This document shows, piece by piece, positions 8,456-33,400 of a DNA stretch of 64,000 nt (position 1 is the first letter of the stretch; each line of letters starts with the position of its first letter). The notes beneath the pieces are model-generated. The model ran no database searches, had not been told where the DNA came from, and worked only from the letters and a program-made list of their open reading frames with translations. A program made the position numbers and the translations under genes. Source of the stretch: Hydrolagus colliei (taxonomy: Eukaryota); contig CM068775.1 of assembly GCA_035084275.1 (NCBI GenBank), forward strand, positions 1,612,001 through 1,676,000, in the 5' to 3' direction.

Positions 8456-8589
8456 GGACAGGCATCTCGGCTTGTCTCATGCAGTTCACTACAATAGAGG
8501 CCACCCCCAACCCCTGCCCCCACCAACCAACTCGCCCAGTTCAGGACTGATGCCGAGCTGGGGGAGGGGAGGGCGGCTGCCCGTATATA

Positions 8590-10135: not shown

Positions 10136-10164
10136 AGCAAAGATGCTGTGATTGACAGCTCCGT

Positions 10165-12010: not shown

Positions 12011-12019
12011 TAAAATGGG

Positions 12020-12460
12020 GGAGAGAGTGAGTGAGTCAGAGAGAGTGAGTGTGTGTGAGGGAGAGTCAGAGAGTGAGTGAGAGAAAGAGAGAGAGAGTGT
12101 GAGAGAAAGAGTCACAGGGTGAGTGAGTGAGGGAGAGAGAGTGTGAGAGAGTTAGAGGGAGAGTCAGAGAGGGAGTCAGAGAGAGTGAGTGTGTGAGGGA
12201 GAGAGTCAGAGAGAGAGTGAGTGTGTGAGGGAGAGAGAGTGAGTAAGAGAGAGAGAATGTGAGAGAATGTGAGAGAGTGAGACGGAGAGCGAGTGGGAGT
12301 GAGAGCGAGAGAGAGGAGTGAGAGAGAGTGAGTGTGTGAGAGGGAGAGAGTGTGAAGAGGAGTGAGAGACAGTGAGTGTCTGAAATACAGAAAGAAAGAG
12401 GGTGGGGGAGTGTGTGAGAGGGAGATAGACATTGATTCAATGAGAAATAGAGGGTGAGAG
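12020..12460. repeat. (GA/GT)-rich microsatellite-like array
   Basis: gagagagtgagt-type units. Confidence 0.9.
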
Positions 12461-12662
12461 AGTGTAATGACATCCTCCCGAAGTGAAAGGCGCTATATAA
12501 TTGCAATTTTGTTGTTGTTATCATGACAGGTGGAGAGAGTGAGAGAGAGAAAGGGAGAGTGTCTGAGATATGGCGAGTGTGTGAGAAAGGGTTTGAGAGA
12601 AGGGAGTGGGAGAAAGCCTTCAAAGGTTTCACACATCATGTGGGAAGCGCAGGTGATTCCTG

Positions 12663-13500
12663 GTGGGCAGACACATGGCAGATGAAGTTCAATGCAGAGA
12701 AGTGTGAGGTGATGCATTTTGGGAGAAGAAATGAAGGGAGGCAATATAGGCTAGATAGTACAATTTTAAATGATGTGAAGGAACAGAGAGACCTGGGGAT
12801 TTGTGTTAGTGACTCGTTGAAGGTGGCAGGACAGGTAGACAAGGCTGTTAAGAAGGCATATGGGATACTAGGCTTTATAAATAGGGGTATAGAATACAAA
12901 AGTCAGGAAGTGCTGACTAACCTCTATAAAACTGGTGAGGCCTCAGCTGGAATACTGTGTTCAATTCTGGTCACCACACTACAGAAAGGATGTGAAGACA
13001 TTGGAAAGGGTACAAAGAAGATTTACTAGGATGGTGCCAGGATTGAGGGACTTCAGCTATGAGGAGAGGCTAGATAGGCTAGGGTTATTCTCTCTGGAGC
13101 AGAGAAGATTGAGGGGAGACCTAATAGAGGTTTATAAGATCATGAGGGGTTTCGACAGGGCAAATAGAGAAAAACTATTTCCACTCGTGGGCGAATCTGT
13201 GATTCGTGGTCACAGATTTAAAATAGTTTCAAGGCGAAGTAGAGGGGAGCTGAGGAGAATTTTTTTCACTCAGCGAGTTGTTGGAATCTGGAATGCATTG
13301 CCTGAAAAGGTGGTGGAGGCTGATTCGATAACAACTTTTAAAAGGGAATTAGATCTTTATTTAGGGAGAACAGGTCTATTAGGCTATGGGGAGCGGGCAG
13401 GGCAGTGGGATTGAATCGCTCTTTTCAAAGAGCCGGCACAGACTAGATGGGCCGAATGGCCTCCTTTTGTGCCGTAAACTTCTATGAATCTATGAATCTA
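12663..13500 (+). mobile_element. 5'-truncated CR1 LINE (young subfamily), frameshifted
   Basis: WADTWQMKFNAEKCEVMHFG...LERVQRRFTRMVPGLR...GLLGYGERAGQWD and a (ttctatga)n tail. Nearly identical by eye to the 44152-46054 copy. Confidence 0.92.
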
Positions 13501-13920
13501 TTTGTAAGGCAAGATTTGCCTCTAACAAATCCATGCTGTCTATCCTTTGTCTTTCTAAGTGAAGATCTATCTTGTCCCTGATTATGGACTCTAGAAGTTT
13601 GCCCACTACTGACTGTAGACTGACTGGCCTGTAGTTCCCAGGTGTGTCCTTCTGCCCCTTTTTAAACAGGGGAGTAACATTAGCAACTCTCCAGTCCTCA
13701 GGAACCACCCCTATGTCCAAGGAAGATTGAAAGATTGTGGCTAGAGTCTCTGCTATTTGCTCCCGTACTTCCCTTAGTAACCTAGGATGCATCCCATCCA
13801 GACCGGGTGACTTATATACCTTGAGGGCCATCAACCTTTTTAGTACTTCCTCTCTGTTTATACTAATCGTATCGATTTCTTCTACCCTCTCCTCCAATAC
13901 TGCAGCATTGGCTGCATCCT
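13501..13920 (-). mobile_element. CR1 ORF2 internal fragment
   Basis: KSPGLDGMHPRLLRE..PEDWRVANVTPLFKKG..PGNYRPVSL. Confidence 0.88.
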
Positions 13921-13933
13921 AAGACCACAGACC

Positions 13934-16060
13934 ATAAGAATTAGAAGCAGGAGTAGGCCATTTGGCCCTTCAAGCCTGCCCTGCCATTCAATAAGATCAT
14001 GGCTGATCTTCTGACCTAACTCTAATTACCTGCCCCATCCCTATATCTCCTAATCCCTCTATTTAAAAAAATCTATCAGTCTCAGCCTTGATAATGTTCA
14101 GGGACTGAGTATCCACAGCCTTCTGGGGTAGTGAATTCCATAAATTCTGAGTGAAGAAATGTTTCCTCAACTCTGTTCTAGAAGGCTGACTCTTAATTTT
14201 AAGAATGTGACCCCTGGTTATAGATTCTCCTGCCAGAGGAAACAGTCCCTCAGTGTCTACTTTATCCATTCCTTTAAGAATCTTATATGTTTCAATTAGA
14301 TCTACCCTCATTCTTCTGTACTCTAGAGAGTACAGCCCTAATTTATTCAACCTATCCTCACAGGTCAGTCCCCTCATCCTAGGAACTAACCTACTGAATC
14401 TACGCTGCACCCTCTCTAAGGCAAGCAAGTATGTCCTTTTTTAAATAAGGAGACCAAAGCTGCACACAATACTCTAGGTGCGGTCTCACCAAACAGTTGC
14501 AGCAAGACTTCCCTACTCTTGTACTCTAAATGTTTTGAAATTAACGCTAGCTTGCCATTCGCTGTCTTAGTTGCTTGCTGCACCTGCAAACTAACGTTTT
14601 GAGACTGGTCTACAAGGACACCCAAATCCCTTTGAATATTAACACTATCTAACCTCTTCCCCCTCTCGAAAATAATAATTTTTTTAATTTTTGTTACCAT
14701 AGTGAATAATTTCACACTTCCCCACATTAAATTCCATCTGCGACCCACCTGCCCACTCCCCTAGCCTATCTGTATCTTGTTGCAATCTTTTTGCATCATC
14801 CTCAGAGCTCACTCTCCTACTTAGTTTAGTGTCATCCGCAAATTTAGACACGCTACATTCAATGTCCTCGTCTAGATCATTGATGTAAATCGTAAATAGG
14901 CCCAAGCAATGATCCTTGTGGCACTCCACTAGTTGCATCCTGCCAATTCGAGAATGACCCGTTTAACCCTACTCTCTGTTTTCTACCAGTTAGCCACTCA
15001 TTTATCCATGTTAATATGTTCCCATTAATCCCGTGGGCCTTGATCTTATGCAAAAGCCTTGTGTGTGGCACTTTATCAAATGCCTTCTTAAAATCTATAC
15101 ATACCACATCTACTGGTTCCCCTCTATCCAAACTGCTGGATATATCTTCAAAAAACTCGAAAAGGTTAGTCAAGCGTGACTCCCCTTTTGCAAAGCCATC
15201 CTCTTCTCTTGTGAAGACAGAGGCAAAGTACAAATTCAGTACATCAGCCATGCCCTCTGCCTCCATAATAAGATTTCTTCCTTGGCCCTTAATTAGCTCC
15301 ACCCTATCCTTGACCAATCTTTTACTCTTAATATGTTTGTATATTATACAAATACCTTAGGGTTCCCTTTAATGTTACCTGCTAATTGTTTATCATACAG
15401 TCTTTTTGCCCCTCTAATTTCCTTTTCAGTTCTCTCCTGCACTTCCTACATTCTGCTTTGTTGACCTCTGTATCTTGGGCCTGACACTTGTCATAAGCCT
15501 CCTATTTTTGCTTTATTTTAACCCCAATTGCCCTCATCATCCAGGGAAGTTTGGATGCCCTATATTTTATCTTTGTTGGAGTGTTTTTGACCTGTGCCCT
15601 GTGCCCATGGACTTTCAAAAGGAACTATCTCTTCCTTGAAGACTGCCCACTGCTCGTTAGCTGTTTTACCTGCCAATCATTCTTTCCAGTCCACCTCGGC
15701 TAGGTCCCGTTTTAACTCACTGAAATTAGCCTTGTTCAAGTTGAGTGTCTTCACCTTTGAGTGTTCCTTATCCCTTTCCATAATTACTCTGATTCTAGTG
15801 ATGTTGTGATCGCTATTTCCTAGGTGCTCATCTACAGAAATCTGTTGTACTTGCCCCACCTCATTCCCCCAAACTATATCCAGCACTGCATCCTTCCTTG
15901 TTGGACTGGAAAATTGATGAAGAAAGTTATCCTGTACACATTTCAGGAATTCTTCTCCATCTTTGCCCTTTACACTACTATTCCACCAGTCGATGTTGAG
16001 ATTATCAAAGTCTCCCATTATCACTACTCTTTGGCTCTGCATGTTTCCGAGATCTGCTCT
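13934..16060 (-). mobile_element. Degenerate CR1 LINE (second subfamily; EN-RT remnants)
   Basis: VVIMGDFDNLNIDW (endonuclease), DFKKAFDKVPH and FADDTKL (RT), LERVQRRFSRL, and a cataagaa-type tail at about 13934. Confidence 0.85.
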
Positions 16061-16976: not shown

Positions 16977-17028
16977 ATGGCCAGTGAGCTCCTCACAGCT
17001 GTCTCTCTGATTCTCTGCCTTTCTGTGG
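16977..17028 (+). CDS. Triple-V IgSF receptor, exon 1 (signal peptide MASELLTAVSLILCLSV)
   Basis: ATG at 16977, hydrophobic leader, phase-1 donor G|gtaagt at 17028/17029. Frame-compatible with the exon at 17457. Confidence 0.85.
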
Positions 17029-17456
17029 GTAAGTCCCTGTTTGGTTGATGGTGGGAGGGTTACTTCCTTTAAACAGGACTTTACCTGGTTAATGTTGCCA
17101 AGGAGATAACTGATGTCACAACATTTGTGTGTCTGTGTTGATCTTTATTATCCTTCTCCACAACCTCCTTCCCTTCCTCTCCAATCCTTTCTCACCTCTC
17201 TCCCTTCTCCTTAAACACTCTCTAACCCTATTGTCAATAGCTGATCTCTGTTGCCACCACCCTTGACTCTATTATACTTGCCAACCCTGCTCTACTTAGC
17301 CCCACTACAGTGACAGCAGGCTGACCATACCTCATTGATTTTGTGACACTCGTATTCTTTCCATCTCCTAAAATAACGTGGGATTCGCACTGAATGTGGG
17401 AAGTTGTGAGTGTATTGATTGGCTCTTTCTCATCCTTTAAACGTTTTCACTTACAG

Positions 17457-17795
17457 GTATAATGGTTCAGTCTCCAATCCTGGTTCAGTCTCCGGAATTT
17501 CGTCCAGTCCGAACGAATCAGATGGTGATTCTTCTGTGCAGAGTTGAGAACGGTAAAGTGTCTGACGTGGACCTGGAGTGGCAAATAAACAACAGAAATG
17601 TTTTGCTACAGCATTACAGAATGGAAGGAAATTTGATTTACACAATTGATAGACTTGTGCAGTCTTTTAGGGACACCAAAAGAAACCTCTTCAGGCTGAC
17701 ACTTAAAAAAGTGTTCACTGCATCCTCTGGCATCTATTACTGTCATGATGCCAGAACAAATAGCATTGGAATCGGGAGTGAGGTCATTGTTGCAG
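17457..17795 (+). CDS. Triple-V IgSF receptor, exon 2: V-set domain 1 with germline J-like G strand
   Basis: Acceptor ttttcacttacag|. B-strand C (VILLC), C-strand W (LEW), F-strand GIYYC, J-like IGIGSEVIV. Phase-1 donor G|gtaagt. Confidence 0.9.
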
Positions 17796-17939
17796 GTAAG
17801 TGAACGACAGATAGGAGCTCAGGCAGTGGCTCTGTGCTGGGGATCCAGGGCATTGAGCCGAGCATCATACTGGCACCAAGAGAAGCAGAGAGAGACAGAG
17901 TGAGACAGAACCAACGAGAGACAAATCCAGGGCAGGGGG

Positions 17940-18160
17940 AGAAGATCAGAGATAGAATCAGATAGAGAAAACCAGAGAGAGAGAGAGAGAAAACCAGAGA
18001 GATTGAGAGAAAACAAGATAGAGAGAGAAAACCAGACAGAGAGAGAGCAACAGAAAACCATACAGAAAGAGAGTCAGACACACAGAGAGAAACCAAACAG
18101 ACAGAGAGAAAATCCAGACCCAGAGTGAGAGAGAAAGCCAGATGGAGAAAAACAGATAGA
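17940..18160. repeat. Purine-rich agagaaaacc/agagag minisatellite-like repeat
   Basis: Repeated gagagaaaaccag units. Confidence 0.75.
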
Positions 18161-18369
18161 GGTGGAGAGACCTGTAGCTTAGTGGTTGGATCACTCGCCT
18201 TGCAAGTAAGAGAACCTGGGCAAGTTTCCTTACTCCACTGTTTACTTAGTAGGAAATAGAAACACAATCGATTGGTAGTATGTGTATTTGTGTGTATCTG
18301 TGTAGTTGTGTGTATGCATCTGTGTATATGTAGGTGTGTGTGCACTCGCATGTGTGTCTGTGTGTGTGT

Positions 18370-19710
18370 CACAGACCAACCTCTCCTCCCACTCCCTCTT
18401 TGAACCTCTCCAGTCTGGTTTCCGCCCTGCCCACAGTACAGAGACTGCACTTGTGAAAGTCACAAACGACATTCTCTCTATCTGTGACCAGGGCTCCCTC
18501 TGCCTCCTTATCCTCCTGGACCTGTCAGCTGCTTTCGACACAGTCCTCCACTTCCTGTCCTCTGTCATCCACCTCAGTGGGACTGCACTCGCCTGGTTCG
18601 AGTCCTATCTCACAAACTGCCAGCGGTACATCTCAATAAACGGTTTTTCCTTCTGCTCTCACCTAGTTACCTTTGCGGTACCCCAGGGAACCATCTTTGG
18701 CCTCCTCCTCTTCCTCATCTACATGCTCTCTCATGGGGATGTTATCCACAGACATGGGACACACTTCCTCATGTACGCAGATGATACCCAACTCTTCTTT
18801 TCCACTTCACTTTGCGACCCCCAGTCCCCCGATGTTCTGTCAGCCTGTCTGTCACACATCAGGAGCTAGATGAACGCGAACTTCCTGCAGCTGAATGTTG
18901 ACAGGACAGAAGCCATACTCTTTGTCTTTCGTCAATGTCTCCATTCGCACGGCTCTCACCTCCTCCACCTTCCCGGCCTGCCCCTAAAATTCTCTGAACC
19001 TGTGCGTAACCTTGGTTTGACCCCCGACTGTCCACATCCAGTCCCTCACCAGCACTGCCTTCTTCCACCTCCGATGGATCGCCCGTCTCCGGCAATACCT
19101 CACCCCAAAAGCCACTGAAATCTTGGTCCATGCCTTTATCACCTCTCGACTGGACTATTGCAACACCCTCCTAGCCGGTCTCCCCTCCACCAGAATCCAC
19201 AAAATCCAGCTAATTCAAAACTCTGCCGTCCGTATACTCACCCACATCTAACTTTGCTTCCCCCATTACCCCAGTCCTTGCCAGACTTCACTGGCTCCCT
19301 TGTCTCTGAGAGGATTGACTTCATGATCCTCACCCTTGTTTTCACATCCCCCCACTCCTCTGCACCCTCCCTACCTCTCTGATCTCCTCTCTCCCCAAAC
19401 CAGCACCCGCTGCTTTCACTCCACCGGGTCTGGCCTCCTCCATGTCCCCAAATCCTCTGCTCAACCCTCAGCAGCCGTGCGTTCAGCCACTACGCCCCGA
19501 GGCTCTGGAACTCCCTTCCTCACTCGGTTTGCCTCGTCCCCTCTCTTCCCAGTTTCAGGTCACAGCTGAAGACCTTTCTCTTTGACCGTGTGCTTGGTCA
19601 CCTTTCAACCCCTGCCCCTGGATCGGTCCCGCGATCTGCTACTTTGAAGCGCTTTGAGACACCGTCCTACATGGAGGGTGCTATATAAATCAAATTTGTT
19701 GATGTTGTTG
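18370..19710 (+). mobile_element. L2 LINE 3' portion (RT) in intron 2 of the triple-V gene
   Basis: QSGFRPAHSTETALVKVTND..LDLSAAFDTV..PQG..YADDTQL, ending in a (gtt)n tail. Confidence 0.9.
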
Positions 19711-20076
19711 TTGTGTCAGTATCTGTGTATATGTGACGCACAGAGCACACACACTGTAGTTGTGAGACAGTCGCTGTGCTCCCTAGTGACAGGTTACAAC
19801 AAGCTGCTGACTGCCGGGACAGGAGACAGGACTGTGTTTGGGGCAGCAGGTGGCAGAAAATCCGATCACTGCACTTGGCTAACGTGGGTTTGTTGGGCAT
19901 ACCCGTGCTACCAACGTCCTCATCGACAGCCAAAGCTTCGGATCTTACTGCTCAGTCACTGGAACTTGCTCCCTCTACCCCTCCATTAGTTGCCCTCGTT
20001 CTGATTTCCAACATCTGTACATAAGGCCTGGAATAATAGCTGGGCTGGAATTTATAGTGTAATTTTTGTCTTAAAG

Positions 20077-20421
20077 CTCCGAACAGTCCATTACTCATTC
20101 CGTCTTCGAAGTTGATAACTGTCAGAGAGGGAGGCATGGCCAAGTTACAGTGCTCCATGGAGAAGGCACGTGTGGAGCAGAACGGTGTTCAATGGTACAG
20201 GGTGTACCCGGGACAGCTGAGGAAGTGGATGATAACACGTGAAAAAAATGGCAGGATACTCGACTCCAGTGATACCGATCAGATTCTCCAGCCATCCATA
20301 GATGCATCTAAAAACACCTACATTCTGATCCTCCCAGCCGTGTCAGTCAGTGATACTGCCGTCTATCACTGCTGTGTGCAAATCAATACCTGTGCGGATG
20401 GTAGTCAACTTAATGTAACCA
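20077..20421 (+). CDS. Triple-V IgSF receptor, exon 3: V-set domain 2
   Basis: Acceptor tttttgtcttaaag|. AKLQC, VQWYR, SDTAVYHCC, J-like CADGSQLNVT. Phase-1 donor A|gtgagt. Confidence 0.9.
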
Positions 20422-20713
20422 GTGAGTACACCTATACTCGGGCCACACCCTAAATTCACACTGCTCCGAGTTAATAATCAGTGTTATCTGAGAGTTTGTG
20501 AGCCAGTTCACCGGAAGAAAATCTCATTTTCAAGTGTCACAGGATCTTTCATGTCCATCACATTACATCACTTTTGAAAGATGGTGTCTCCCTGACCATT
20601 GAACGGGAGTGTGAGCTCAGCTCTAGTTTACAACCTGGACTGCCCTTTATGTCCTCTGACGCTTTTTAGCGTTCAGCGCAGTTTGAAATTTATTGATGAT
20701 TTTTCCCTTAAAG

Positions 20714-21055
20714 GTGCTGTTCCTCTCCTGCTTCAGTCCCCGACCCTGGAACGTGCCACACAGGGACACCCCGCCCGGTTACAGTGCTCCATCGAGAACA
20801 TCAGCGTGAGCAACACTGATGTACACTGGTACCGACAACTCCCAGGACAGCAGAGGGAGTGGATTTTAACACAATATAAAAATGGCAGGAAGGTAGATCA
20901 CAAATATACTAATCAGCGTCTCCAGGCATCCAGAATCACCGCCAATAACACCTACATTCTGATAGTCAGACGCGTGACACTCAGTGATGCTGCTGCCTAT
21001 CAGTGCTGTGTGTGGGTAGATGTCTGTGGGAACGGGACCCAGCTGAACATAACCA
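20714..21055 (+). CDS. Triple-V IgSF receptor, exon 4: V-set domain 3
   Basis: Acceptor ttttcccttaaag|. LLQSP, ARLQC, HWYRQLPGQQREW, SDAAAYQCC, J-like CGNGTQLNIT. Phase-1 donor A|gtaagt. Confidence 0.92.
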
Positions 21056-22156
21056 GTAAGTAAATTTACTCCAGATTTTATTATCTGATTTCAGCTGATC
21101 AAATGTCCTCAGGAGCTTTCTCTAGGTACATATCCTAAACTCACACTGTGTGTAGGCAGAAAGTGAGGATGGAGAGGCACGAGTGAGCAGGTAGAGGCGA
21201 GGAGGGAGTGGCACTGAGTGACAAGGGAGTAGCGCGGACTGAGAAAGGAGTGACACAGATGAGAGAGAGGCACAGAGTGAGGAGAGAGAGGCGCAGCCTG
21301 AGGAGAGAGAGGTGCAGTCTGAGGAGAGAGAGGAGCAGTGTGAAGAGCGAGAGGCAGCTACAAACTAAACAATAAATCAATCCCAAATCAACTATACCCA
21401 ACCCAACATCACCCTCAACCTTGGGGGCCAATCCAGGACTGTCGAGCATTTTTGACGTCCTCCCGATGTGAAAAGCACAATATAAATATCAGTGTCTATT
21501 GTATTAGCCGCCCAAACCCCAGCATTTATTTATCGCCTTTGAACAACAACAACAACTTGGATTTATAGAGAGCCCTCCACGCCAGACAGCGATTTAGAGC
21601 ACCTCACAATAAAAGAATCCAGGGCCGAGGTAGCGGGAGGGCGAAGACAGTGACTAAAAGCGTGGTCAAAAAGAAAAGTCTTTAGGCATGAGCTGAAAAC
21701 AGGACAGTGCGAGGTGATGGGAGTGAGGAAGGGTTTTGCAGAGCCTTGTGGCGTAGTGGCTGAAGGTACAGCAGCCGAAGATAGAATGCAAGGACTGGGG
21801 TAATTTGGTAGCAATCTTTGGTTGGGTCACGGAATTTTGGATAACCTGGACTTTGTGAAGGGTGGAAGGATAATTGGGGTCAAACCTGATGCCTAACTTG
21901 CATATGGGTTTGGAGAGGGTCAGCTAGTTGGAGGAGGTGAGAGTTGTGGGATTGAATACATCGACGAGGGCCAAAGGGTATGACCTTCACGTCATTAGCA
22001 CATCCCAATTCCAACTTCTACATTGCTTTGTGTGAAATGAACTCTGTAATGTAAATTTTCATTGTATTTTGTTTTAGTGTTTTTTTTACATGTGTGACAG
22101 TGTGTAATTGTCAGTTATTATGATTCTATCATTCTCTCCACATTGTCTGGATACAG

Positions 22157-22254
22157 TGAGCAGAAACCAGATCTGGATCATCATGGGTCTGCTCTAGGAT
22201 TCCTGGCCTTTGCTGGAGCAGTTGTTCTCATCTACAAGATGTGTGGTTTGTAAA
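22157..22254 (+). pseudogene. TM exon copy 1 (frameshifted; in-frame TAG at 22195-22197)
   Basis: Paralogous to 27871-27968, with a 1-nt deletion after ATGGGT. Entered in phase 1 it reads MSRNQIWIIMGLL*. The shifted frame restores ALGFLAFAGAVVLIYK. Confidence 0.75.
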
Positions 22255-22261
22255 GTCCTGT

Positions 22262-25200
22262 ACATAGAATCATAGAATCTTATGGCACAAAAGCATACGG
22301 CCCATCTAGTCTGTGCCAGCTCTTTGAAGTTAGCAACTCAATCCAACTCTCTGGCTCTCTCCCCATAACCGCGCAAACCCGTCCTCCCCAAATAAACATC
22401 TACCTCTCTTTTAAAAGAGGAGTGAGTAGGACTCTGTTATCAACTCTGTTATCGGCCTCCACCACCTTTCCTAGCAATGCATCCCAGATTTGAACAACTC
22501 GCTGAGTGAAACCAATTCTCTGCAGCTCTCCTCTGCTTTTAGAAACTATTTTAAATCTGTGACCTCGAGTCACTGGCACACCCCACAGTTTTCCCCTGTT
22601 TACCCTATTGAATTCCCTCATGATCTTTGAAACCTCTGTTAGGTCTCCTCATAACCTTTTCTGCTTCAATGAGAATAAACCTAGCATCTCTAGCCTTTCC
22701 TCATAACTGAAGTCCCTCATTCCTGGTACAATCCTGGTAAATCTCCTCTGCACCTTTTCCAATGCCTTAACATCCTTCCTAAAGTGTGGTGACAAGAATT
22801 GAACACAGAACCTGACCTGAGGCCTAACCAAAGTTTTACAGAGTTTAGTCAGAACTTGCTGAGTTTTGTACTCTATGCCTCTAATTATAAAGCCTTGTAT
22901 CCCATATGCTTTTTTAACAACCGTATCTACCTGTCCTGCCACTTTCAAACATTCACTTACCCAATAATAACAACAACAACACAATTACATTTCTAGAGTG
23001 CCTTTCACATCGGGAGGACATCCCAAGGCGCTGAACAATCAGGTCGGGAAATGAGCAGGTGGGCGGTCAGAGTAAAGGGAAGGGGAGGAGAGTAGGAGAG
23101 GGGGAAGAGGTAGGAGGTAAGGAGAAGGCTCATTCGAAGAGGAAGGTCCTGAGACTGGCCTTGAAGGAGGAAAGGGAGGAGGGGAGGCAAAGGGACTGCG
23201 GAATGGAGTTCCACAGTGTGGGAGCAGAGAGGCTGAAAGCCCGACCACCGATGTTAGGGTGGTTAAGGTGGTGGACGTGGAGCAGGCTAGAGCCTGCTGA
23301 ACGGAGGGGATGGGCAGGCTGATAGGGAGTCAGCAGGTCTGAGAGATAGGCAGCTGCAAGACTGAATGGCCTTGAAGGTGCTCAAGGTAGATAAGTCACC
23401 TGGTCTGGATGGGATGCATCCTAGGTTACTAAGGGAAGTACAGGTGCAAATAGCAAAACCCCCCAGGTCTCTTTATTCATTCACACCACTTAAAATTGTG
23501 TTATCTAGCCTATATTGCCTCCCCTCCTTTCTCCTCTCAAAATACATCACCTCACTTTCTCCACATTAAACTTCATCTGCCATGTGTCTGCCCATTTTAC
23601 CATTCTGTCTATATCTTCTTTCAGATGGCTACACTTCTCATCACTATTTATCCTAACTTTGTGTCACCTGTAAACTTGCAAATGGCCATATTACCAAGTC
23701 CAGATCATTAATATCAATTAAAGAGCAGTGGTCCCAATAGCGATCCTGGAAAATGCCACTGTACACTTCCCTCTAGTCTGAACAACAGCCATTCACCACA
23801 ACTCTGCTTTCTGTCTCCCAGCCAGTTCTGGATCCACGCTGCCACTGTCCTTTAACGCTGTGGGTTTCTATTTTCTTTATAAGCCTTTTATGTGGCACTT
23901 TGTGAAATGCCTTTTGAAAGTCCATATAAACTACTTCAACTGCACTACCCCCATCCACCCTTTCCGTTACCTCTCAAAAAAACCTCATATTTGTAAGACA
24001 AGATTTGCCTTTAACAAATCCATGTTGGCTGTCCTTTATTAACCAATATCTTTCTAAGTGAAGATCTAACTTGTCCCTGATTATAGTCTAGAAGTTTCCC
24101 CACTACCAAACGTTAGACTGACTGGCCTGTAGTTCCCAGGTTTGTCCTCCTGCTGCTTTTTGTGCATTGGAGTAACATTAGCAACCATCCAGTCCTCTGG
24201 CACCACCCCTGTGTCCAAGGAAGATTGCAACATTGTGGTCAGAGCCTGTGCTATTTGCACCCATACTTCCCTCATTAACCTAAGATGCATCCCGTCCAGG
24301 CCAGGTGACTTATCTATCTTGAGCACCGTCAGTCTTTTTAGTACCTCCTCTCTGTTGATACTTATCCCATCAATGTCCTCTACCCTCTCATCCGATACTG
24401 TGGCATTGGCTGCATCCTCTTCTTTTGTGAAGACAGATGCAAAGTAATCATTCTGTGCATCAGCCATGCCCTCTGCCTCCACAATAAGATTTCCTCCTTG
24501 GTCCCTAATTGGCCCCACTCTACCGTTGACTAACCTTTTATTCTTGACATGCTTGTAAAATACCTTAGGGTTCCCTGTAATCTTACCTGCTCATGATTTC
24601 TCGTATAGTCTTTTTGCCCCTCTAATTTCCTTTTTCAGTTCTCTCCTGCAACTTCCTATATTCTATTTGGTTGTCTTCTGTATTTTGGGCATTACATTTG
24701 TCATAAGCCTCCTTTTTTTGTTTTACTTTAGTCCCAATTTCTTTAGTCATCCCGGAAGGTTTAGATGCCCTACTTTTTCTCTTTGTGGAAATGTATTTGT
24801 TCTGTTCCCGAACTCTCTGCTCCTTGAAGGCATTCCACTGCTCCTTAGCTGTTTTACCTACCAATCTGTCTTTCCAGTCCACCTTGGCTAGGTCCCTTTT
24901 TAACTCACTGAAATTAGCCTTCTTCCCGTTGAGTAGCTTCACCTTTGATTGTCCCTTTCCATAAGTACTTTGAATCTAATGATGTTGTGATCACTATTGC
25001 CCAGATGCTCTCCTTCTGAAACCTGCTCCACTTGCTCCACTTTATTCCCCAGAGCTAGATCCACCACTGCTTCCTTCTTCATTGAGCTGGAAACATACTG
25101 ATCAAGAAAGTTATCCTGTACACATTTCAGGAATCCTTCTCCCTCCTTGCCCTTTACACTGTTACATCCTTAGAAAGGGATCCAAGAAGGCTGAAAAACA

Positions 25201-25760
25201 GAATGAGGAAGGAAGCAATGCTAGATCTAGTTCTGGGGAATGAAATGGGGCAAGTGGAGCAAGTTTCAGTCGGAGGGCATCTGGGCAATAGTGATCACAA
25301 CATCATTAGATACTCTTGCTTTTGCCAGTCTATGTTGGGATATTGAAGTCCCCCATTATGACTACTCTATTGGCTTTGCAGCTTTCTGAAATTTGCTTGC
25401 AGATCTGCTCGTCTATCTCCTTCCCACTATTTGGTGGTCTATAGAATAACAGTGTAACAGCTCCTTTTTTGTTCCTTAACTCTAACCAGATTGTGTGTTT
25501 AGGCCTTCTTGCGCCTCATCCCTTTCTAAGGCTGTAACTGTGTCTTCGATTAATATTGCCACTCCGCCTACATTTATTCCTTCTCTATCCCTCCTGAATA
25601 CATTATAGCCAGGTATGTTCAGTTCCCATTCCTGCCCTTGTTTGAGCCAGGTCTCCGTTACTGCTCGTCCATCATATCCCCTAGCAGCAACTTGAGCATG
25701 CTGACCAATCTTGCTTGCACTCCCAAGACAGCCTGTTCTGTATTTTACCCCCGTCTTATC
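22262..25760 (-). mobile_element. Degenerate long CR1 with a nested L2 (about 22970-23360) and a short inverted CR1 piece (about 23365-23455, +)
   Basis: catagaat tail at 22262. RT motifs DFQKAFHKVPH and NYRPVSL. EN motif VTETWLKQGQEWELNIPGY at about 25600-25660. Confidence 0.82.
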
Positions 25761-26735
25761 CCTCCTTTTTCTGGACCACTGCTTTTTACATTCCCATCCC
25801 CCCTCAAATGTGGCTCCATATTCTGTCTGAAATCATCCACGTTGAAGTCCAATTTAATCACCATATTAATCCAAATATAAATCCATCAATAGGTATCCAA
25901 GTATTGGTGTATGGTTTCCAGTTTGACATCCGAAAGTATCCATGTATTGTTATGCCATTCCCAGTTCGATATACAAGTACCATTGTATGTCTACAGTTAC
26001 TCCACTCAAAGTCTTGATCTTCCCATTCTTCTGAAGCTAGAACATGGATTTGTGAATCCAAGTTCCAGTTTATCCTTTCTCATACTTCTTTCTTGAATCA
26101 ATCTCTATCCAGTTCATTAGGTCACCTATCACTGATTGTCCTTTGCAAGATGGTTCCTGTGCAAAAGCAAATGCAACACAGCTCCCTCTCAAACTGCAGA
26201 CCATTTCTCCATGAGAAAATTATTGATGAGGACTGAAACACTTTGTTGTTGATAAACAATCTTTTGTTTCTTCTGCAAAGCTAATGATAACTAAGTCCTG
26301 TCACATACGATTGATTAGATATGTCTCATATATGTATATCTGCTAATATATTTGAGATATTATTTAACACATTAATTACAGAGAGAAGACAATTAAATAG
26401 GACATTGGAATAGTCTTGCCATGAGGTGATAAAGGCATGGACCAGGGTTGTGGCAGCTTTTGGAGTGAGATATTGGCGGAAACCAGCGATGTGTCGGAGA
26501 TGGAAGAAAGCGGTACTGGTGAGGGACTGGATGTGGAGGAGGAAGGATGTCAAACATGATGCCTAAGTTGCATATGGGTTTGGAGATGTTTGGCAGCATG
26601 TCAGGTCGGTGGAGGATATGAGAGCCATGGGATTCGACGAGAGCCAAAGAGTATGGCCTTCATGTTGGTAGCACATCCCAATTCCAACTTCTACATTGGT
26701 TTGTGTGAAATGAACTCTGTAATGTAAATTTACTA

Positions 26736-27771
26736 CAGTAAAAGTCTGTTTATCCATGACCTGATGAACCATAACTTCTGTATAACCAGCAACTCAAAAA
26801 AAATGTCCCCATTCGAATAACCAAATCTTATCTGGCACAATCTCGGTGGCGCATTTAATGAGTCGATTGTCGCACGGGAGTACAGTACAATTAGTTCTGA
26901 ATGCTCCTGGTAGTGGTACTTCCAGTATTTTTTTATTAAAGCCGCTGTCAGTTTTCCTTTCCTCTNNNNNNNNNNNNNNNNNNNNNNNNNNNNNNNNNNN
27001 NNNNNNNNNNNNNNNNNNNNNNNNNNNNNNNNNNNNNNNNNNNNNNNNNNNNNNNNNNNNNNNNNNNNNNNNNNNNNNNNNNNNNNNNNNNNNNNNNNNN
27101 NNNNNNNNNNNNNNNNNNNNNNNNNNNNNNNNNNNNNNNNNNNNNNNNNNNNNNNNNNNNNNNNNNNNNNNNNNNNNNNNNNNNNNNNNNNNNNNNNNNN
27201 NNNNNNNATTGCCTGTATAGGCTGACTGTATCATGGGTTTATACACTGTTTGGGTGGGCAGTTGAGTGGGAGAAGGAGAGAGGCTGGCAGAAAGAGGGGG
27301 TGAGAAAGAGAGGAGTGGGAGAGAGAGGTGGGGGAGAGGAGGTGAGAGAGGGAGGGGGTGTGAGTTGATTAATTTAGATGGATATAAGAGGAGAGCAGTG
27401 CGGTTGCGTTTGGAGCCAATGAGATGCCAGACTGCCTGAATGTGTATGTGAAAGAGAGAGAGGGGAGGAGGTAGAGAAAGAAAGAAAAAAAAGAGGAAAA
27501 ACCAACAGTACCACTTTAAGCCACTAGCATCCGCCATTGTAGAAGTTTGCTTTGTGATTGTGTGCTGTGTTTATAGACTGTAATCGATATTTATTGCTTA
27601 TTGGTCAGTATCTATACAATATTCTGTTACTATTTAGTCTATTATTAAGATGGTATGTTTAAAAAAAAGCTTATGATTTTTGTGTTGCATTTTTGGCAGC
27701 TGGCAGCCGGAATATCCGGCATTCCATTTAACCAGCATTGGCCAGGTCCCGAGGGTGCCGGGCCTTTACTG
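26736..27771 (-). mobile_element. Non-autonomous Tc1/mariner (pogo/Tigger-like) element spanning an N gap
   Basis: TA|CAGTAAA at 26734-26742 and TTTACTG|TA at 27765-27773. The paralogous empty site is at about 22050-22070. Confidence 0.7.
26966..27207. other. Assembly gap (others at 42775-42997, 56324-56699 and about 63457-63594)
   Basis: Runs of N. Two of the gaps fall at tandem-unit junctions next to microsatellites. Confidence 1.
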
Positions 27772-27870
27772 TATCTTGTTTTGCTTTTTGTTTACATGTG
27801 TTACAGTGTGTAATTGTCAGTTATTGCGATGCTCTGTTTCTTTCATTTTCTTCACATTGTTTGGATACAG

Positions 27871-28010
27871 TGAGCAGAGAACAGGTCTGGATCACTGTGG
27901 GAACAGCTCTGGGAAGCCTGGCCTGTGTTGGAGGAGTTTTTCTCATCTACAAGATATTGGTTTGTAAAGTAACATCCTGTCCATGTGGCTCCATATTCTA
28001 CCTGAACTAA
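27871..28010 (+). CDS. TM exon copy 2 (intact): SREQVWITVGTALGSLACVGGVFLIYKILVCK, then either donor AAA|gtaaca or read-through tail VTSCPCGSIFYLN*
   Basis: Acceptor tttggatacag|. Uncharged hydrophobic stretch followed by K. Splicing exons 1-4 to it gives a continuous 1218-nt frame (405 aa). The link to the V exons is inferred. Confidence 0.7.
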
Positions 28011-28865
28011 TCCACGTTGAAGGCGAGCAGTCAGACTTTGGGGAAATGAAGATGTGGCAAATGTAACTTGTCTTTTTACCAAGTTCCACACCGAACCTCC
28101 AAATGACAACTGATTAGTGACGAGACACATAAGAACATACAAATTAGGAGCAGGAGTAGGCCATTCGGCCCTTCAAGCTTGCTCCGCCATTCAATAAAAT
28201 CATGGCTGATCTTCTAATCTAACTCCACCTACCTGCCTTATCCCCATATCCCTTAATCCTTTTTTCCATAAGTGGACACAAAGTAAGGTTATCATAAGAG
28301 GAAACAAGCTGTAATTTAGAGGAGACACCTTACAAACAGTGTTGTAGTGTGGAATGCCTGGCTCTTCCAACAGTAGTGTTTACTGAGAATTAGACAAATA
28401 TGGGACAAAAATATTTAAGGTTTTGAGAAAATGCAGATTAATTGCATTATAGAGCTCCAGCAGGGAGCACGCAATAGCACAGACCCGATGGGGAAGAGAG
28501 CAGTAAATGGGGTTAGATTAGAGAGCTGCAAAGTGGAGCAAGCAGCAGCACAGACAGGACTCAAAGCTCTGTAGCATCATGGGGATGGATGTAAAGCAAG
28601 GCACCAGGGAGATTACCACAGAATTGGTCAAACGCGTGTGTCTTCAGTTGGAATTGAAAGATGTGCAAAGAGTGAGCAAGGCAGAGGGGCTGAGATAGGG
28701 ATTTGCAGAAGTTAGGAATGTAGTGGCTAAAAGTACCATCACAGACACAATGGTGAACGAGCAGAATAAAGTGATAATGGAGCTGAGGTGGGGGGGAGTG
28801 AGCACCAGCACAGACACGAGGGAGCAAATGATTTTCCACTTAGGCTGTCAATGTGTCTCAGATAC

Positions 28866-28917
28866 CCTGAGCGGGCAGCTCAGCTGGTGGTGCCTTGTCC
28901 CCAGCAGTCAAGGTAGT
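28866..28917 (-). pseudogene. IGHJ: IgH J segment (YLDCWGQGTTS*), with in-frame stop
   Basis: WGQGT motif. The upstream RSS on - has nonamer GGTTATTGC (28948-28956), a 23-bp spacer and heptamer CACTGTG (28918-28924). TGA follows GTTS and the donor is weak. Confidence 0.85.
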
Positions 28918-29323
28918 CACAGTGCTACAGTCAGTGTGCTGATCACTGCAATAACCTGCTGTGAGGGCCGGCCACACAAACACCTTATTATTGTAAATGG
29001 TGATTTCCCCAAACTAAATACCGGGAACCGTATAGTTCTGTAATGTTCTGAAAACAATTGCACAGCTCTGTGTTTAGCTGTTAAATGTTTGTATCTTTGC
29101 CAGTTTGCAATGTTCCTGTCAAACACCTTCACTTGTCACCCACAGATTCAAGATTATATTTTATGTTTTTATGTCGATTAAAATCTGGTAAAATCCTCAG
29201 TGTTAGGCCCCATTATAAACATATCAAATCTCCTCACGTTAATTGGAACCCACACACGCCAGCAGTGGGAGAGATTATCTGGTTTGGTGTTCAAGGGTTT
29301 TTGTATTGACAGTTAATGCTGTG

Positions 29324-29334
29324 AGCCCCGTATA
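29324..29334 (-). other. IGHD: IgH D segment (TATACGGGGCT) flanked by 12-type RSSs
   Basis: 3' RSS on -: CACAGCA (29317-29323), 12 bp, perfect ACAAAAACC (29296-29304). 5' RSS: CACTGTG (29335-29341), 11-12 bp, AGTATGTGT-like nonamer. Confidence 0.8.
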
Positions 29335-29546
29335 CACAGTGACACAGTCCCATACACATACTGACCTCAGTGTCTGCTCTATACTGGCTGCCAACATTCA
29401 CTGAAATGGACTATTTTCCTGTGGCATGGCACAGAGTCTGTCTAACACTTTCTTCATAGCCACAGAAACAGAAAACAAATATGTCCAACAGCTGGTAATA
29501 AGAGGATATTTGTGAACTGTCATCTAGTCAGTCTCCAATCGCAGTG

Positions 29547-29563
29547 CTTCCCGCCTCAAACAG
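29547..29563 (-). other. Candidate upstream IgH D segment (D1) with degenerate RSSs
   Basis: CTGTTTGAGGCGGGAAG lies between CACTGTG (29564-29570) and CACTGCG (29540-29546). Nonamers are poor; the best 3' nonamer ACAAATATC is 26 bp away. The position fits a V-D1-D2-J layout. Confidence 0.4.
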
Positions 29564-29811
29564 CACAGTGTCACATACCAGCTGAAATCACAGAATATTA
29601 CAGCACAAATAAGCAGCTCATTCACCCCCCATCAAACCACCGTTCACTGTATTGGTTTGGAATGATAAGGAATCCATTCTAAGCTTTTCCTTTAATCTTT
29701 GCTACAGACACAGCATTGACACCATAACTGCCCTTCAGTTTAGGGTGGGAGGGGCTGCCTTTCCTCCCCTCATGTATTTGTAGGAGACCAGCCCAGTTGC
29801 CTCTCACTGCG

Positions 29812-30123
29812 AGTCACTTGCACAGTAAGAGATGGCGGTGTTGTGAACTGTTGGGCTTTTGATGTTCAGATCGATGATGTTATTGGAATTATTACTGTTA
29901 ACAGTGACACGGCTTTGAATGTCAGGTGTGTAACGACTGTTGGACGCAGATGTGTACGAAATGTAGAGCAGCCATTCCTGCCACTTCCCAGGAACCTGCC
30001 AGACCCAGTTCATGCCATATTTGCTGAGATCAAACCCGCTGGTTCTACAGGTGAGTCTCAGGGCCTGGCCAGGCTTCCCGGTTAGAGACGATGGCTGTGT
30101 CAGCACCACATCGGCCTGGACAC
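29812..30123 (-). pseudogene. IGHV: IgM-like VH exon, open frame but degenerate, with leader disrupted
   Basis: [38 protein letters not shown]: CGCAGTG (29805-29811), 23 bp, ACAAATACA (29773-29781). Non-canonical GKWQEW and HNTAISYC. Confidence 0.9.
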
Positions 30124-30248
30124 CTGTAAAGAACAAATGACCGAAGATTAATTATTGTGAGATATCCCGGCTCTGTGACATTGCAGAGAGAATCACAGCC
30201 ACACACACACACACACAGTCAGACTTGTCCCAATAATAGAGCTCACGG

Positions 30249-30915
30249 TGTGAAACTGGTTCGTTTCAGTACCTTGGTTGGTGGTTCTGTTCACAAATAT
30301 GTGACTCGGGTGTGTAGTTCAACAACGTTTATTAAGCGTTTGCAAAGCGGTGTACACCTTAGGTACAGACTCTCGTCCGTCTACTCCAAGTGCACACACA
30401 GAGCAACCTTTACATGGGTAGTTATATATTTTTCGCCACATGACTCATGCCGGGCTATAAACAACATGGTCTTGCAACTGCATCATAAAAACATCGTAGC
30501 CTTGTAGTCAATGAGACATAAGCCAGCTATAGCGTACAATAATAAGATATGCCTAGAGCTTTCTAATAACAAGATAGGCCTCGAAGCCTGGAGCTTACAA
30601 TAACATCATAACCTTGTAGTAAAATATGATAAACAATAATATCATAGCCTTGTAGTAAAATATGATAAACAAGCCTAGAGCTTTCTATGCAACAACAAGG
30701 CAGTATAGGCGTCAGTTTACACAAACAACCGAACAATGGTATGTCCGCCAGACACAATAACACAAAACCATGGTATGTCTTAAAAGTCATAACATCGCTC
30801 CTGTTTTCCTCTTATTGCTAAACAGGCTCATGAGTCCTGACCAAAGGTTAAGGAAAGCATAGTGCAGGTTTACAGATAACTAGTATGTGTACAAGTCAGA
30901 CGAGCTGACTTCTCA
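30249..30915 (-). mobile_element. Solo LTR (667 bp) inserted at the VH leader donor
   Basis: Starts TGTGAA and ends TTCTCA. 4-bp TSD ACGG (30245-30248) / ACGC (30916-30919). Empty site in the paralogue at about 43597-43602. AATAAA on - at 30328-30333 and an internal repeat of about 35 bp at 30600-30670. Confidence 0.85.
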
Positions 30916-30916
30916 A

Positions 30917-30963
30917 CGCGAGAAGACAGCCAGCAACAGACTGAGAGATATCAGGGACCTCAT
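30917..30963 (-). pseudogene. IGHV: VH leader exon (MRSLISLSLLLAVFS), separated from its donor by the LTR
   Basis: ATG at 30963, near-identical to the leader at 43600-43645. TATA-like TTAAATA on - at 31059-31065. No ATGCAAAT octamer seen within about 300 bp. Confidence 0.85.
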
Positions 30964-31597
30964 GTTTCTGGGCAATTGTCAGAACTGACCCTTGAGCCCA
31001 ATAACCGAGGGACAAAGATCTGCCGGATGGACAGATGGCCTCAGTCCCCAGTGACCGCTATTTAACAAGGGGCAGTGGGGCCAGGTGTTTGGAGAATGGA
31101 CCAACAGCTACAGGACTGAGGGGAGTCACGCCTCACATTCCCTCTGACCTGCACAGATCAATAATTGTGCCCTTTACATTCGGCATTGACAGCAACTTCA
31201 TTTTTGAATATGAATTCAAATTCATAAGTGTCAATGGTATTAGCCCCAGCACTGACCCTGAAGCCTTGTGGATTGTTTTGTTTAACGTATGTGTGTGTAT
31301 GTGTTTGTGTGTATTTCTATGCTAGTGAGTGACTGTGTGTGTGTCTATGCTTGTGTCTTTGTGTAGTAGAGCAATAAGTCCAACACATATCTGCGGGAAC
31401 ACAATTTCACTGAGCTACTGTTAAAGTTAAGTAGATGTTGGAAGCAGATTGTTTCACCAAATCAATGAGATATATTGATTGTGTGATACAGTATATTGTT
31501 TAGGACATGGCATGTGTGTGTGACAGCCAGGATGGTGGAAGGCAATCCAGATGGACCGTGGTATTTTGACGTGCTGCAATTCTTATTCTTATAAACC

Positions 31598-31987
31598 TGA
31601 TCTTATAAACCTAATAGAGGTTTATAAGATCATGAGGGGTTTCGACAGGGCAAATAGAGAAAAACGATTTCCACTCGTGGGTGAATCTGTGACTCGTGGT
31701 CACAGATTTAAAATAGTTTCAAGGCGCAGTAGAGGGGAGCTGAGGAGAAATGTTTTCACTCAGCGAGTTGTTCGAATCTGGAATGCATTGCCTGAAAAGG
31801 TGGTGGAGGCTGATTCGATAACAACTTTTAAAAGGGAATTAGATCTTTATTTAGGAAGAACGGGTCTATTAGGCTATGGGGAGCGGGCAGGGCAATGGGA
31901 TTGAATCGCTCTTTTCAAAGAGCCGGCACAGACTAGATGGGCCGAATGGCCTCCTTTTGTGCCGTAAAATTCTATGATTCTATGATT
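31598..31987 (+). mobile_element. Short 5'-truncated CR1 with an inverted 5' junction
   Basis: LIEVYKIMRGFDR..GQWD and a ttctatga tail. 15-bp inverted repeat at 31598-31612 / 31618-31632. Confidence 0.9.
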
Positions 31988-32819
31988 TATAATAATAATT
32001 GTTAATATCATAAACCTTGCATTTGAAACAATACCTCATTACATTGATGAATTATCTCAAGGAACATCACAGAATGAATTGTAAAGGTAGTGACTGTGTA
32101 TTTTGTGAGCAATAATTAATATTGTGACTTAATTAAAATATGTATTATTTCCTGTGGTTTAGCGATGTTCTGATCTGTAGATTATCCCCTGTTTACTGCT
32201 CTTGCAATCCTGATTTCACATCACATATGGGAATGAAGGTGTGAATCCTCTTGTTACCTCTACTGGCATTTTTATGTGGATATATTAAAGTTAAAAAAAT
32301 TATAATTGTATGATTTTTTAATATTTATATTAAAATAAACTTGTTATGTTCCTGGCAATTTTAATCTTGTTGTTTCTATTTGATCACTTCTCAATGTGTT
32401 TTCCATTTACTCCTACTTCACTCTCTGTTCTCTTACCATTGAGGAGGTTTATCTTATTGTCTGTGTCAGTGTCAACCATGCCCACGATATTTATCTCTGG
32501 ATTGGAAGATAATGGGAATGAATTCAGCCTTCAGTCCACTTATAATAATAATCCTCTCTGTTCTCAGTCGCTGCATTTACTGTAATCACAAGCTTGATTG
32601 GTTATGAAATAGTGCAATGGTGGTGAACGGTTTGATGTGGCGGCTCATGATTTCAAGCCAGACATGAAATGTTCTCTTGGGGTGAGAAGCCAGGTGGGGA
32701 GGGCTGGTGGTGCAGTGGGAGCCCAGTGTAATGTCAGACCAGCCACACTCCTTCAGGACAAGGGGGAGAAGGAAACTGGGAAGAAATAACTTGAGGCTTG
32801 AATCAGAAATGGTTTCAGT

Positions 32820-33400
32820 CATTTATTATTATTTTATTATCTTGATGGATTATTACCAGACGTGTGGAGTAAGAAAACTTGCCCAAGGTTTTTGCACTAC
32901 CAGGAATCAAACCTTGGTCACTGGCTTGCGAGATGAGTGCAGATGAGTGTGTACCCCTGAGCTATAGGACTCCACACTGAGACATGAGGATCCACCACTG
33001 ATTCCTGAATTCTGCTTTGGGCACTGGATCTGGAACCTGTACAAGATCTACAAGGCCTCCTATCTTACAGCAAACCTGTCAGAGCACAACATCAATCCCA
33101 CACGTCAGGAAACTAATTACAGTGGAGTCCTGTAGCTCAATAGTTAGAGCCCTCGACTTTCAAACGAGTGACCTATGTTTCAATTCCAGGCAAGGTGATG
33201 GCTTGGGCAAGTTTCCTTAATCCACATAATGCATCCCAAAGAAACCGAAAAATAAATTGGTCATTTCAATCCAAGACTATTTTGGGATACTGCTGTTTGC
33301 AATTGGCTGCCGTGTTTCGCTGACAAATATGGAGTCAATCCAGTTTACAGTATATTCCTTGAGACACAGTCTGGAAGTCCACAAACCTGGGTTTCATTCA
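32820..33400. mobile_element. Divergent pair of tRNA-headed SINEs (one on -, one on +); paralogous pairs near 46920-47510 and 58140-58730
   Basis: Heads gtagctca..gg..agagc / ttcaattcc in opposite orientations, each with the aagtttccttac body. Confidence 0.6.

Follow-up and report, generated by a model that had tools for sequence, protein, structure and literature searches.

What kind of receptor is encoded by a gene that strings together several variable (V) domains, each of them already joined to its own joining (J)-like strand? Non-rearranging VJ domains, as in NKp30, SIRP, CD8, NITR, PRARP and UrIg, are the main material for reconstructing the origin of the antigen receptors. Here, we analysed a 64-kb stretch of the genome of the holocephalan Hydrolagus colliei (GenBank assembly GCA_035084275.1, contig CM068775.1, positions 1,612,001 to 1,676,000 of the forward strand; 'the window' in the following, numbered from its first base), in which a sequence-only reading had noticed a leader, three V domains with J-like strands and a transmembrane (TM) exon. 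We propose that the locus is in all probability a real protein-coding gene for a type I membrane glycoprotein with signal peptide, three non-rearranging VJ domains, stalk, TM segment and a tail without signalling motifs. It would be the counterpart of the predicted Callorhinchus milii protein XP_007882777.1 and the holocephalan short-tailed form of a clustered receptor family restricted to chondrichthyans.

Exon structure of the gene

The gene consists of five exons on the + strand, and in-silico splicing yields a 405-aa product ending at position 28010. The exons are as follows, with a slash at each exon boundary:

16977-17028 (+): leader exon, MASELLTAVSLILCLSV plus the first base of a Gly codon; ATG...CTGTGG/gtaagt, phase-1 donor
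17457-17795 (+): V1 exon, cacttacag/GT...GCAG/gtaagt; V-set domain, divergent, including a J-like strand of its own (IGIGSEVIV)
20077-20421 (+): V2 exon, cttaaag/CT...ACCA/gtgagt; VJ domain …YHCCVQINTCADGSQLNVT
20714-21055 (+): V3 exon, cttaaag/GT...ACCA/gtaagt; VJ domain …YQCCVWVDVCGNGTQLNIT
27871-28010 (+): TM exon (TM2), ggatacag/TG...TAA; stalk, TM helix VWITVGTALGSLACVGGVFLIY, short tail and stop codon TAA

All donors read GTAAGT or GTGAGT, a pyrimidine tract precedes every acceptor and all junctions are in phase 1. The rebuilt model reproduces exactly the leader, three phase-1 VJ exons and TM exon in one 405-aa frame that had been read from the letters, and the five peptide motifs quoted at that time were all found on the + strand where they had been placed. 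The leader is conserved when compared to that of C. milii XP_007882777.1 (MASEPLTAVTLTLCLALG). The V2 and V3 exons share 70% nucleotide identity, which marks them as tandem duplicates. Apart from V1 to V3 and the heavy-chain V (VH) copies described below, a six-frame scan of the whole window revealed no additional exon for an immunoglobulin (Ig) domain, and no Ig-domain open reading frame (ORF) was found between V3 and the TM exon.

Domains and fold of the predicted protein

Pfam assigns three V-set stretches to the 405-aa protein (E 4.8e-29). The best value for a C1-set domain, 20.4 bits against a cut-off of 21, stays below threshold and belongs to a match that underlies a V-set match. None of the three V exons showed a heptamer-spacer-nonamer in a scan for recombination signal sequences (RSS); within each, the J-like strand continues directly into the GT donor, and there is no separate J segment. 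The earlier statement that the gene has neither RSS nor C1 domain is thus borne out.

An AlphaFold2 run on a 19-sequence alignment of the family predicted three beta sandwiches of 9-10 strands and a TM helix at residues 362-394, with a mean pLDDT of 80.8. The top PDB matches found by Foldseek were CODV and DVD-Ig heavy chains (E 3e-22; phmmer 4e-23), and the sequence matches were antibody or antigen-receptor V domains throughout, each among the matches listed: 60 entries filled by engineered multi-V antibodies, in which NKp30, SIRP, NITR and T-cell receptor (TCR) gamma chains cannot be ranked. Within this scope, antibody V domains were the best sequence matches and an antibody light-chain VL-J was the best match to the stretch from framework region 3 (FR3) to J, which agrees with an antigen-receptor-like character of the domains, ascribed earlier to the third of them. 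In V2 and V3, one additional cysteine directly follows the F-strand Cys and another occupies the position of the J Phe (a CC…C trio); these two are confined to holocephalan V2/V3-type domains among the family domains compared. They may form a disulfide that staples a short loop resembling the third complementarity-determining region (CDR3).

A family of multi-VJ proteins in cartilaginous fish

A single-sequence search of 5.8 billion proteins retrieved 76 homologues (E 3e-120 to 1e-18), all of them chondrichthyan. A profile search raised the number to at least 84 relatives from sharks, rays, skates and chimaeras, again exclusively chondrichthyan, and gave no bony-fish protein at E <= 1e-5; candidates for this search were pre-selected by shared words and the taxonomic restriction holds at that sensitivity. 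A search with V3 as single domain and a word pre-filter returned family fragments only, plus one contig of the Logan collection.

The C. milii protein XP_007882777.1 (395 aa, predicted, annotated as "IGSF3-like") was reached by an exhaustive HMMER search with V1 and subsequent cluster look-up. It is 55% identical over 392 aa (E 4e-149) and co-linear with the gene product over leader (MASEPLTAVTLTLCLALGIMVQS), V1, V2, V3, TM segment and short tail. Its first domain (P0102) is the only close relative of V1 (47% identity). The gene is thus an orthologue or close paralogue of XP_007882777.1. Further matches of the exhaustive V1 search, in Perca, Salminus, Naja and Priapulus, were rejected as generic multi-Ig proteins without J motifs.

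The same V-V-V-TM plan is found in C. milii XP_042188803.1 and in Amblyraja radiata LOC116976517, the latter with leader, three V exons and TM exon, hence one exon per VJ domain. This plan (leader, one phase-1 exon per VJ domain, TM exon) is common to our gene, the Amblyraja P0027 gene and C. milii contig WEZY01002071.1. V3 is about 86% identical at the nucleotide level to two C. milii V exons on this contig. These two exons (9921-10265 and 13183-13527) stand in tandem, 3.26 kb apart, and differ mostly by replacement changes (ratio of nonsynonymous to synonymous divergence, dN/dS, 1.34); as RefSeq model P0007 begins inside the first of them, this model is 5'-truncated. No neighbours were seen within 10 kb of the Amblyraja locus.

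Is this family new? The V-V-V-TM form had been called unrecognised and possibly undescribed, which turned out to be correct in part only. Co-linear models are already deposited in RefSeq, under mutually inconsistent automatic names (IGSF3-like, pIgR-like, SIRP-like or SIRP-alpha-like, Ig heavy chain-like, perlecan-like). A published description of a chondrichthyan multi-VJ family was not found in open-access full texts, accession numbers included, although a description elsewhere is possible. The full-length counterpart of our gene is an uncharacterised prediction and not a well-described gene.

A motif scan of the 76 homologues counted 1-5 VJ domains per model, and across the family the number is 1-5 or more. 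The members end in different ways:

long tail with immunoreceptor tyrosine-based inhibitory or switch motifs (ITIM/ITSM): 80-90 aa; LYYADI, TVYATV, TEYAAI; elasmobranch members
tail with ITAM (immunoreceptor tyrosine-based activation motif): 60-72 aa; DYENV…YMALQRPDQSIYSEL; elasmobranch members
short tail: from a few residues up to about 20, motif-free; members in skate, catshark and C. milii
no tail: TM-less models P0002, P0028 and P0030; elasmobranch

The secreted elasmobranch models end in a dedicated, different sequence (…TDKSMLAHTGRVTVTAPYWEHV) and not in a truncated TM segment. Two genes of Mobula hypostoma, one with ITIM and one with ITAM, bear separate, neighbouring LOC numbers (LOC134350338 and LOC134350340). 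The signalling tail is a feature of subtypes and does not define the family. The TM segment of our gene is homologous to that of ITAM-type elasmobranch members (tblastn 3e-5).

A tree of individual domains separates three elasmobranch types, namely N-terminal, repeated middle and membrane-proximal domains. Within the middle type, V2 and V3 form a group with C. milii domains (99% SH-aLRT). V1 stands alone on a long branch, and its identity to elasmobranch domains does not exceed 32%. Many family members have perfect FGxGTxLxV motifs, and an N-G-T sequon lies inside the GxG bulge in 87 of 169 unique family domains; if glycosylated, it may hinder antibody-like V-V pairing. A further three-VJ member, P0100 (MetaClust UPI00045732AD, 446 aa; its UniParc identifier suggests C. 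milii as the species, unconfirmed), has perfect J motifs (FGTGTQL, FGNGTEL) and a 40-aa tail (…KSQKEYFKRQNQ…) unlike the ITIM, ITAM or short tails of other members.

Rapid change of the V exons

The Logan contig ERR6050737_494278 (1646 bp, genomic, from a public run) corresponds to positions 19559-21180 of the window with 95.7% identity, and its ORFs and splice sites are intact. Identity amounts to 98.5%, 97.6% and 98.4% in the introns, compared to 95.4% in the V2 exon and 96.2% in the V3 exon. Between contig and window, dN is 0.050 and dS 0.023; nonsynonymous sites have changed at a higher rate than the introns (Fisher p = 0.001). Such an excess of exon over intron divergence argues against a simple loss of constraint, which would give equality. 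Changes accumulate mainly in the loops that resemble CDR1, CDR2 and CDR3. Of eight successive residues in the V2 CDR2-like loop, seven differ (DSSDTDQI vs CAGDMEHL), which has the look of a gene-conversion tract or of focused diversifying selection. Deeper comparisons (dS 0.17-0.64) gave dN/dS values of 0.64-0.81 and no stop or indel in any V exon. As far as substitution patterns can tell, this would be a fast-evolving recognition domain and not a dead gene.

Two TM exons and a gap at the 3' end

The intron between V3 and TM2 contains an assembly gap (Ns at 26966-27207), at a distance of 5.9 kb from the V3 donor and of 663 nt from the TM acceptor. The frame of the gene is unaffected since the Ns touch no exon. 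Two features of this intron have to be considered together with the gap:

22157-22197 (+): TM1, a duplicate TM exon with the same acceptor ggatacag/TG; its phase-1 reading is MSRNQIWIIMGLL followed by a stop
26732-27764 (strand not assigned): insertion of about 1 kb in the V3-TM2 intron, containing the gap and bounded by a 5-bp direct repeat TTTAC

Positions 21879-22058 match 26549-26731 (80%) and positions 22063-22256 match 27770-27970 (81%). Both flanks of the gap are thus co-linear with one contiguous paralogous unit, which supports the join across the gap. The direct repeat at both ends of the extra sequence has the form of a target-site duplication and indicates a single insertion that spans the gap. 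Decayed copies of long interspersed nuclear element (LINE) type (22263-25400) form a block that takes up most of the distance from one TM exon copy to the other.

The TM1 acceptor lies only 1.1 kb 3' of V3; this nearer copy had escaped the sequence-only reading. Around this exon, the similarity region (22063-22256) has 81% identity with TM2 and 79% with the TM exon of C. milii; due to a 1-nt deletion, the phase-1 frame of TM1 ends after 13 codons. TM1 is therefore either a pseudo-exon or an alternative terminal exon leading to a TM-less product of 372 aa. TM2 retains an intact TM frame and a 3' flank in common with C. milii (27776-28503 vs WEZY01002071.1 18379-18973). It has a 1-nt deletion of its own just before the ancestral stop, by which …YKMC(S/D)L plus stop became …YKILVCKVTSCPCGSIFYLN plus stop and the tail became 14 aa longer than in C. 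milii. On this basis, the 405-aa model via the distal TM2 is the best one available.

IgH-type elements and the rest of the window

According to the sequence-only reading, the gene is linked to an immunoglobulin heavy-chain (IgH) cluster. We found three IgH-type elements on the opposite strand, 0.9-2.1 kb past the stop codon of the gene, and one further VH copy:

28866-28956 (-): JH-like segment; RSS with 23-nt spacer, GGTTATTGC-23-CACTGTG; …WGQGTTS, then an in-frame TGA at 28882-28880
29296-29362 (-): diversity (D)-like element TATACGGGGCT (29334-29324), flanked by CACTGTG and CACAGCA-12-ACAAAAACC
29811-29773 (-): VH RSS-like element, CGCAGTG-23-ACAAATACA, with mutated heptamer
29812-30123 (-): VH segment, Pfam V-set, 57-60 bits per domain to VH3-type antibody domains
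43310-43601 (-): second VH copy, 96% identical to 29951-30248, with canonical PGKGLEW, beside a gap (42775-42997)

The second VH copy is broken off after FR2 (…LLYISYT, then stop). The whole window contains no C exon. A functional IgH cluster as neighbour was rejected because C exons are missing from the window and both the V RSS and the J are defective. Moreover, no VH was found within 10 kb of two C. milii family loci. The linkage claim does not survive in its original form: on present evidence, the gene appears to adjoin a dead V-D-J remnant only.

The remainder of the window is rich in repeats. Repeated units of about 11-13 kb, with near-identical ORFs at, for instance, 33894-34199, 47763-48056 and 58988-59290, contain four single-exon paralogues of rhodopsin-family G protein-coupled receptors (GPCRs) of 316-319 aa; one of these matches Pfam 7tm_1 with E 1e-20:

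3927-4874 (+): GPCR paralogue
37886-38584 (-): GPCR paralogue, split by a stop or frameshift
50805-51761 (-): GPCR paralogue
61753-62709 (-): GPCR paralogue

A LINE-type retroelement with an open 518-aa reverse-transcriptase ORF (Pfam RVT_1 E 4e-35) occupies 44155-45708 (+), and many decayed copies of this type are present, including 12487-13411 and 13493-15356. A retroelement fragment also lies in the V1-V2 intron, outside the gene product:

18306-18866 (+): reverse-transcriptase fragment, Pfam RVT_1 E 2.7e-14

Long low-complexity arrays open on both strands (SPSLPP / PHSP / SLSL) at 1-700, 7340-8476 and 11800-12640 are microsatellite-like sequence and not genes.

Weighing the alternatives

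How firmly can the locus be taken as a real gene for a membrane receptor? Several observations weigh against this assignment. An exact look-up of the 405-aa product found no match on record in the assembly index, and a look-up of XP_007882777.1 likewise gave no record. The cytoplasmic tail (KILVCKVTSCPCGSIFYLN) lacks ITIM, ITSM and ITAM, the TM segment lacks a charged residue, and neither tblastn with 16 elasmobranch tails nor motif scans of 22198-37000 detected cytoplasmic signalling exons 3' of either TM exon. V1 is very divergent and does not have the conserved Asp before YxC. With TM1 out of frame and the TM2 tail frameshifted relative to C. milii, disruptive events have hit the 3' end of the gene. 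For the Logan contig, which could be a paralogue instead of an allele or orthologue, the comparison of dN with dS alone is not significant (p = 0.27, 29 substitutions). A rival reading is a decaying or non-functional copy, lying in a repeat-rich region that includes a broken GPCR copy and a dead V-D-J remnant. The frameshift and stop in TM1, the deletion that rewrites the last residues of TM2, the very long branch of V1, the retroelement fragments filling the introns and the defective VH and J in the neighbourhood would all fit. However, the five exons of the model are open, have consensus splice sites and are co-linear with the intact C. milii model throughout, exons have diverged more than introns in a near-identical contig, and the V exons are free of stops and indels at dS up to 0.64, so that we consider decay improbable. 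It is also unlikely, in our view, that the main product is soluble, with V3 spliced to TM1 as terminal exon to give a secreted three-V protein of 372 aa and TM2 rarely or never used. TM1 does share its acceptor with TM2, has a good polypyrimidine tract, would be met first by the spliceosome and is followed by AATAAA signals at 22391 and 22674, and TM-less models occur among the elasmobranch relatives. Yet it is TM2 and not TM1 that kept the intact TM frame and the 3' flank shared with C. milii, and the secreted elasmobranch models use their own ending in place of a truncated TM. The gap of estimated length between V3 and TM2, which adjoins simple GA-rich repeat, might even suggest that TM2 and the VH remnant were wrongly scaffolded to the V exons. 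Such an artefact is hardly credible: the flanks are two abutting halves of one duplicated unit (22058/22063 vs 26731/27770), a 5-bp target-site duplication bounds the extra sequence, and the order from V to TM is the same in C. milii and Amblyraja. We thus favour a real gene with a membrane-bound three-VJ product.

Where the family comes from is a separate question. As a tentative proposal, which we hold with little confidence, it may comprise chondrichthyan-wide innate 'antigen-receptor-like' receptors made of VJ domains only, with ITAM or ITIM in cis: the cartilaginous-fish counterpart of the NITRs, representing either a surviving sister lineage of the V domain that was invaded by RAG or an ancient germline-joined TCR-gamma-like or IgL-like offshoot that turned into a paired innate system. 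Equally conceivable, if doubtful, is that the VJ exons are secondary derivatives of a rearranging gene (e.g. TCR-gamma-like or IgL-like), germline-joined, tandem-duplicated and later given signalling tails, rather than relics from before RAG. Against a small human panel, a lead only, family profiles scored 52-66 bits for TRGV9+J and 37-51 for IGLV/IGHV, above NKp30 (11-26 bits), the first domain of SIRP-alpha (11-25) and CD8-alpha (9-17). This ranking would be expected for derivatives of a rearranging gene, as would the antibody VL-J as best PDB match to the FR3-to-J stretch and the perfect FGxGTxLxV of many members; the germline joining of Ig genes established in cartilaginous fish provides a precedent (PMC12227049). 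On the other side, the panel is small and human, and V-domain phylogenies are weakly resolved. The presence of the family in holocephalans and elasmobranchs implies that it predates their split on either reading.

Possible function and significance

What, then, would such receptors do? We hypothesise that, when expressed, the fast-evolving CDR-like loops bind a ligand, pathogen-derived or polymorphic self, on the outside of leukocytes or epithelial cells. The elasmobranch relatives would signal in cis, via ITIM/ITSM with recruitment of phosphatases or via ITAM with recruitment of Syk-family kinases, and might act as paired inhibitory and activating receptors in the manner of NITR, SIRP and KIR. 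The motif-less product of our gene, with its uncharged TM segment, could serve as ligand-binding decoy, as adhesion form or as a signaller that depends on a partner. A soluble form of 372 aa may arise when the nearer, frame-shifted TM1 is used as last exon.

The presence of this family in holocephalans and elasmobranchs would bring the oldest jawed-vertebrate lineage into the comparison of VJ domains. It is distinguished by VJ domains as the only domain type, near-perfect J motifs, rapid change of CDR-like loops and the occurrence of both ITIM and ITAM tails. It would supply a paired innate receptor system of the immunoglobulin superfamily, missing from the described repertoire of cartilaginous fish. 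If true, this provides a new data point on the movement of VJ domains between innate and adaptive recognition. As a practical consequence, annotated genomes, more than 20 of them, carry wrong or misleading automatic names for these genes, which could be corrected.

Comparison with known receptor systems

Rearranging Ig and TCR V segments come with RSS, a separate J and C1 exons, none of which is present in our gene. NKp30 and XMIV combine one VJ domain with a charged TM residue and with linkage to the major histocompatibility complex (MHC); our gene differs in its three domains and uncharged TM segment, and the window contains no MHC gene. SIRP combines a V domain with two C1-set domains and a TM Lys for DAP12. 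The likeness lies in the VJ-like membrane-distal domain and in a paired system whose members carry ITIMs, activate, or have short signal-less tails; the YADI/EYAAI-type motifs of the elasmobranch ITIM tails resemble those of many ITIM receptors, and several members were automatically named SIRP-alpha-like. The two C1-set domains and the TM Lys of SIRP are absent from our gene.

UrIg and UrIg2 are reportedly non-rearranging, 'antibody-like' shark genes (Flajnik and colleagues, 2023 and 2025), and a single-exon VJ without rearrangement in cartilaginous fish is what our gene has in common with them. In them, several C1-type domains come after a single VJ domain; descriptions are limited to elasmobranchs, and UrIg2 is linked to the IgH/TCR-alpha-delta complex (PMC12227049). 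Membership was rejected, since our gene lacks C1 domains; it also has three VJ domains in place of one. The skate MDIRs have I/C2-type or CD300/pIgR/TREM-like domains without J motif (PMC3031540) and, compared by published description only, would differ from our V-set domains with J motifs. Similarly, pIgR/CD300-like domains possess an extra C-C' disulfide and no J motif, whereas our gene lacks such a cysteine pair.

NITRs comprise one domain (V) or two (V plus I), and the activating members among them rely on a charged TM residue. Our gene resembles them in a V domain with J-like motif that is encoded without rearrangement. Teleost NITRs are clustered germline genes of this kind with inhibitory (ITIM) and activating forms (PMC3031540), and there is no report of NITRs from cartilaginous fish (PMC6795676). 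By description of their architecture they are set apart from the chondrichthyan family, which stacks 1-5 or more VJ domains and carries ITAMs in cis, and from our gene, where three V-set domains bear J motifs, the TM segment is uncharged and ITIM is absent. A superficial likeness exists to the engineered formats DVD-Ig, CODV, single-chain variable fragments (scFv) and diabodies, in which V domains follow each other head to tail with very short linkers; these are man-made, rely on VH/VL pairing and have no evolutionary relationship to the gene.

This leaves C. milii XP_007882777.1. What sets our gene apart is an additional TM exon copy, frame-shifted, and, 0.9 kb 3', a VH-D-J remnant; its frameshift-extended …YKILVCKVTSCPCGSIFYLN also stands against YKMCDL at the end of the C. 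milii protein. The co-linear architecture is identical, and the CC…C cysteine trio in V2 and V3 is common to both.

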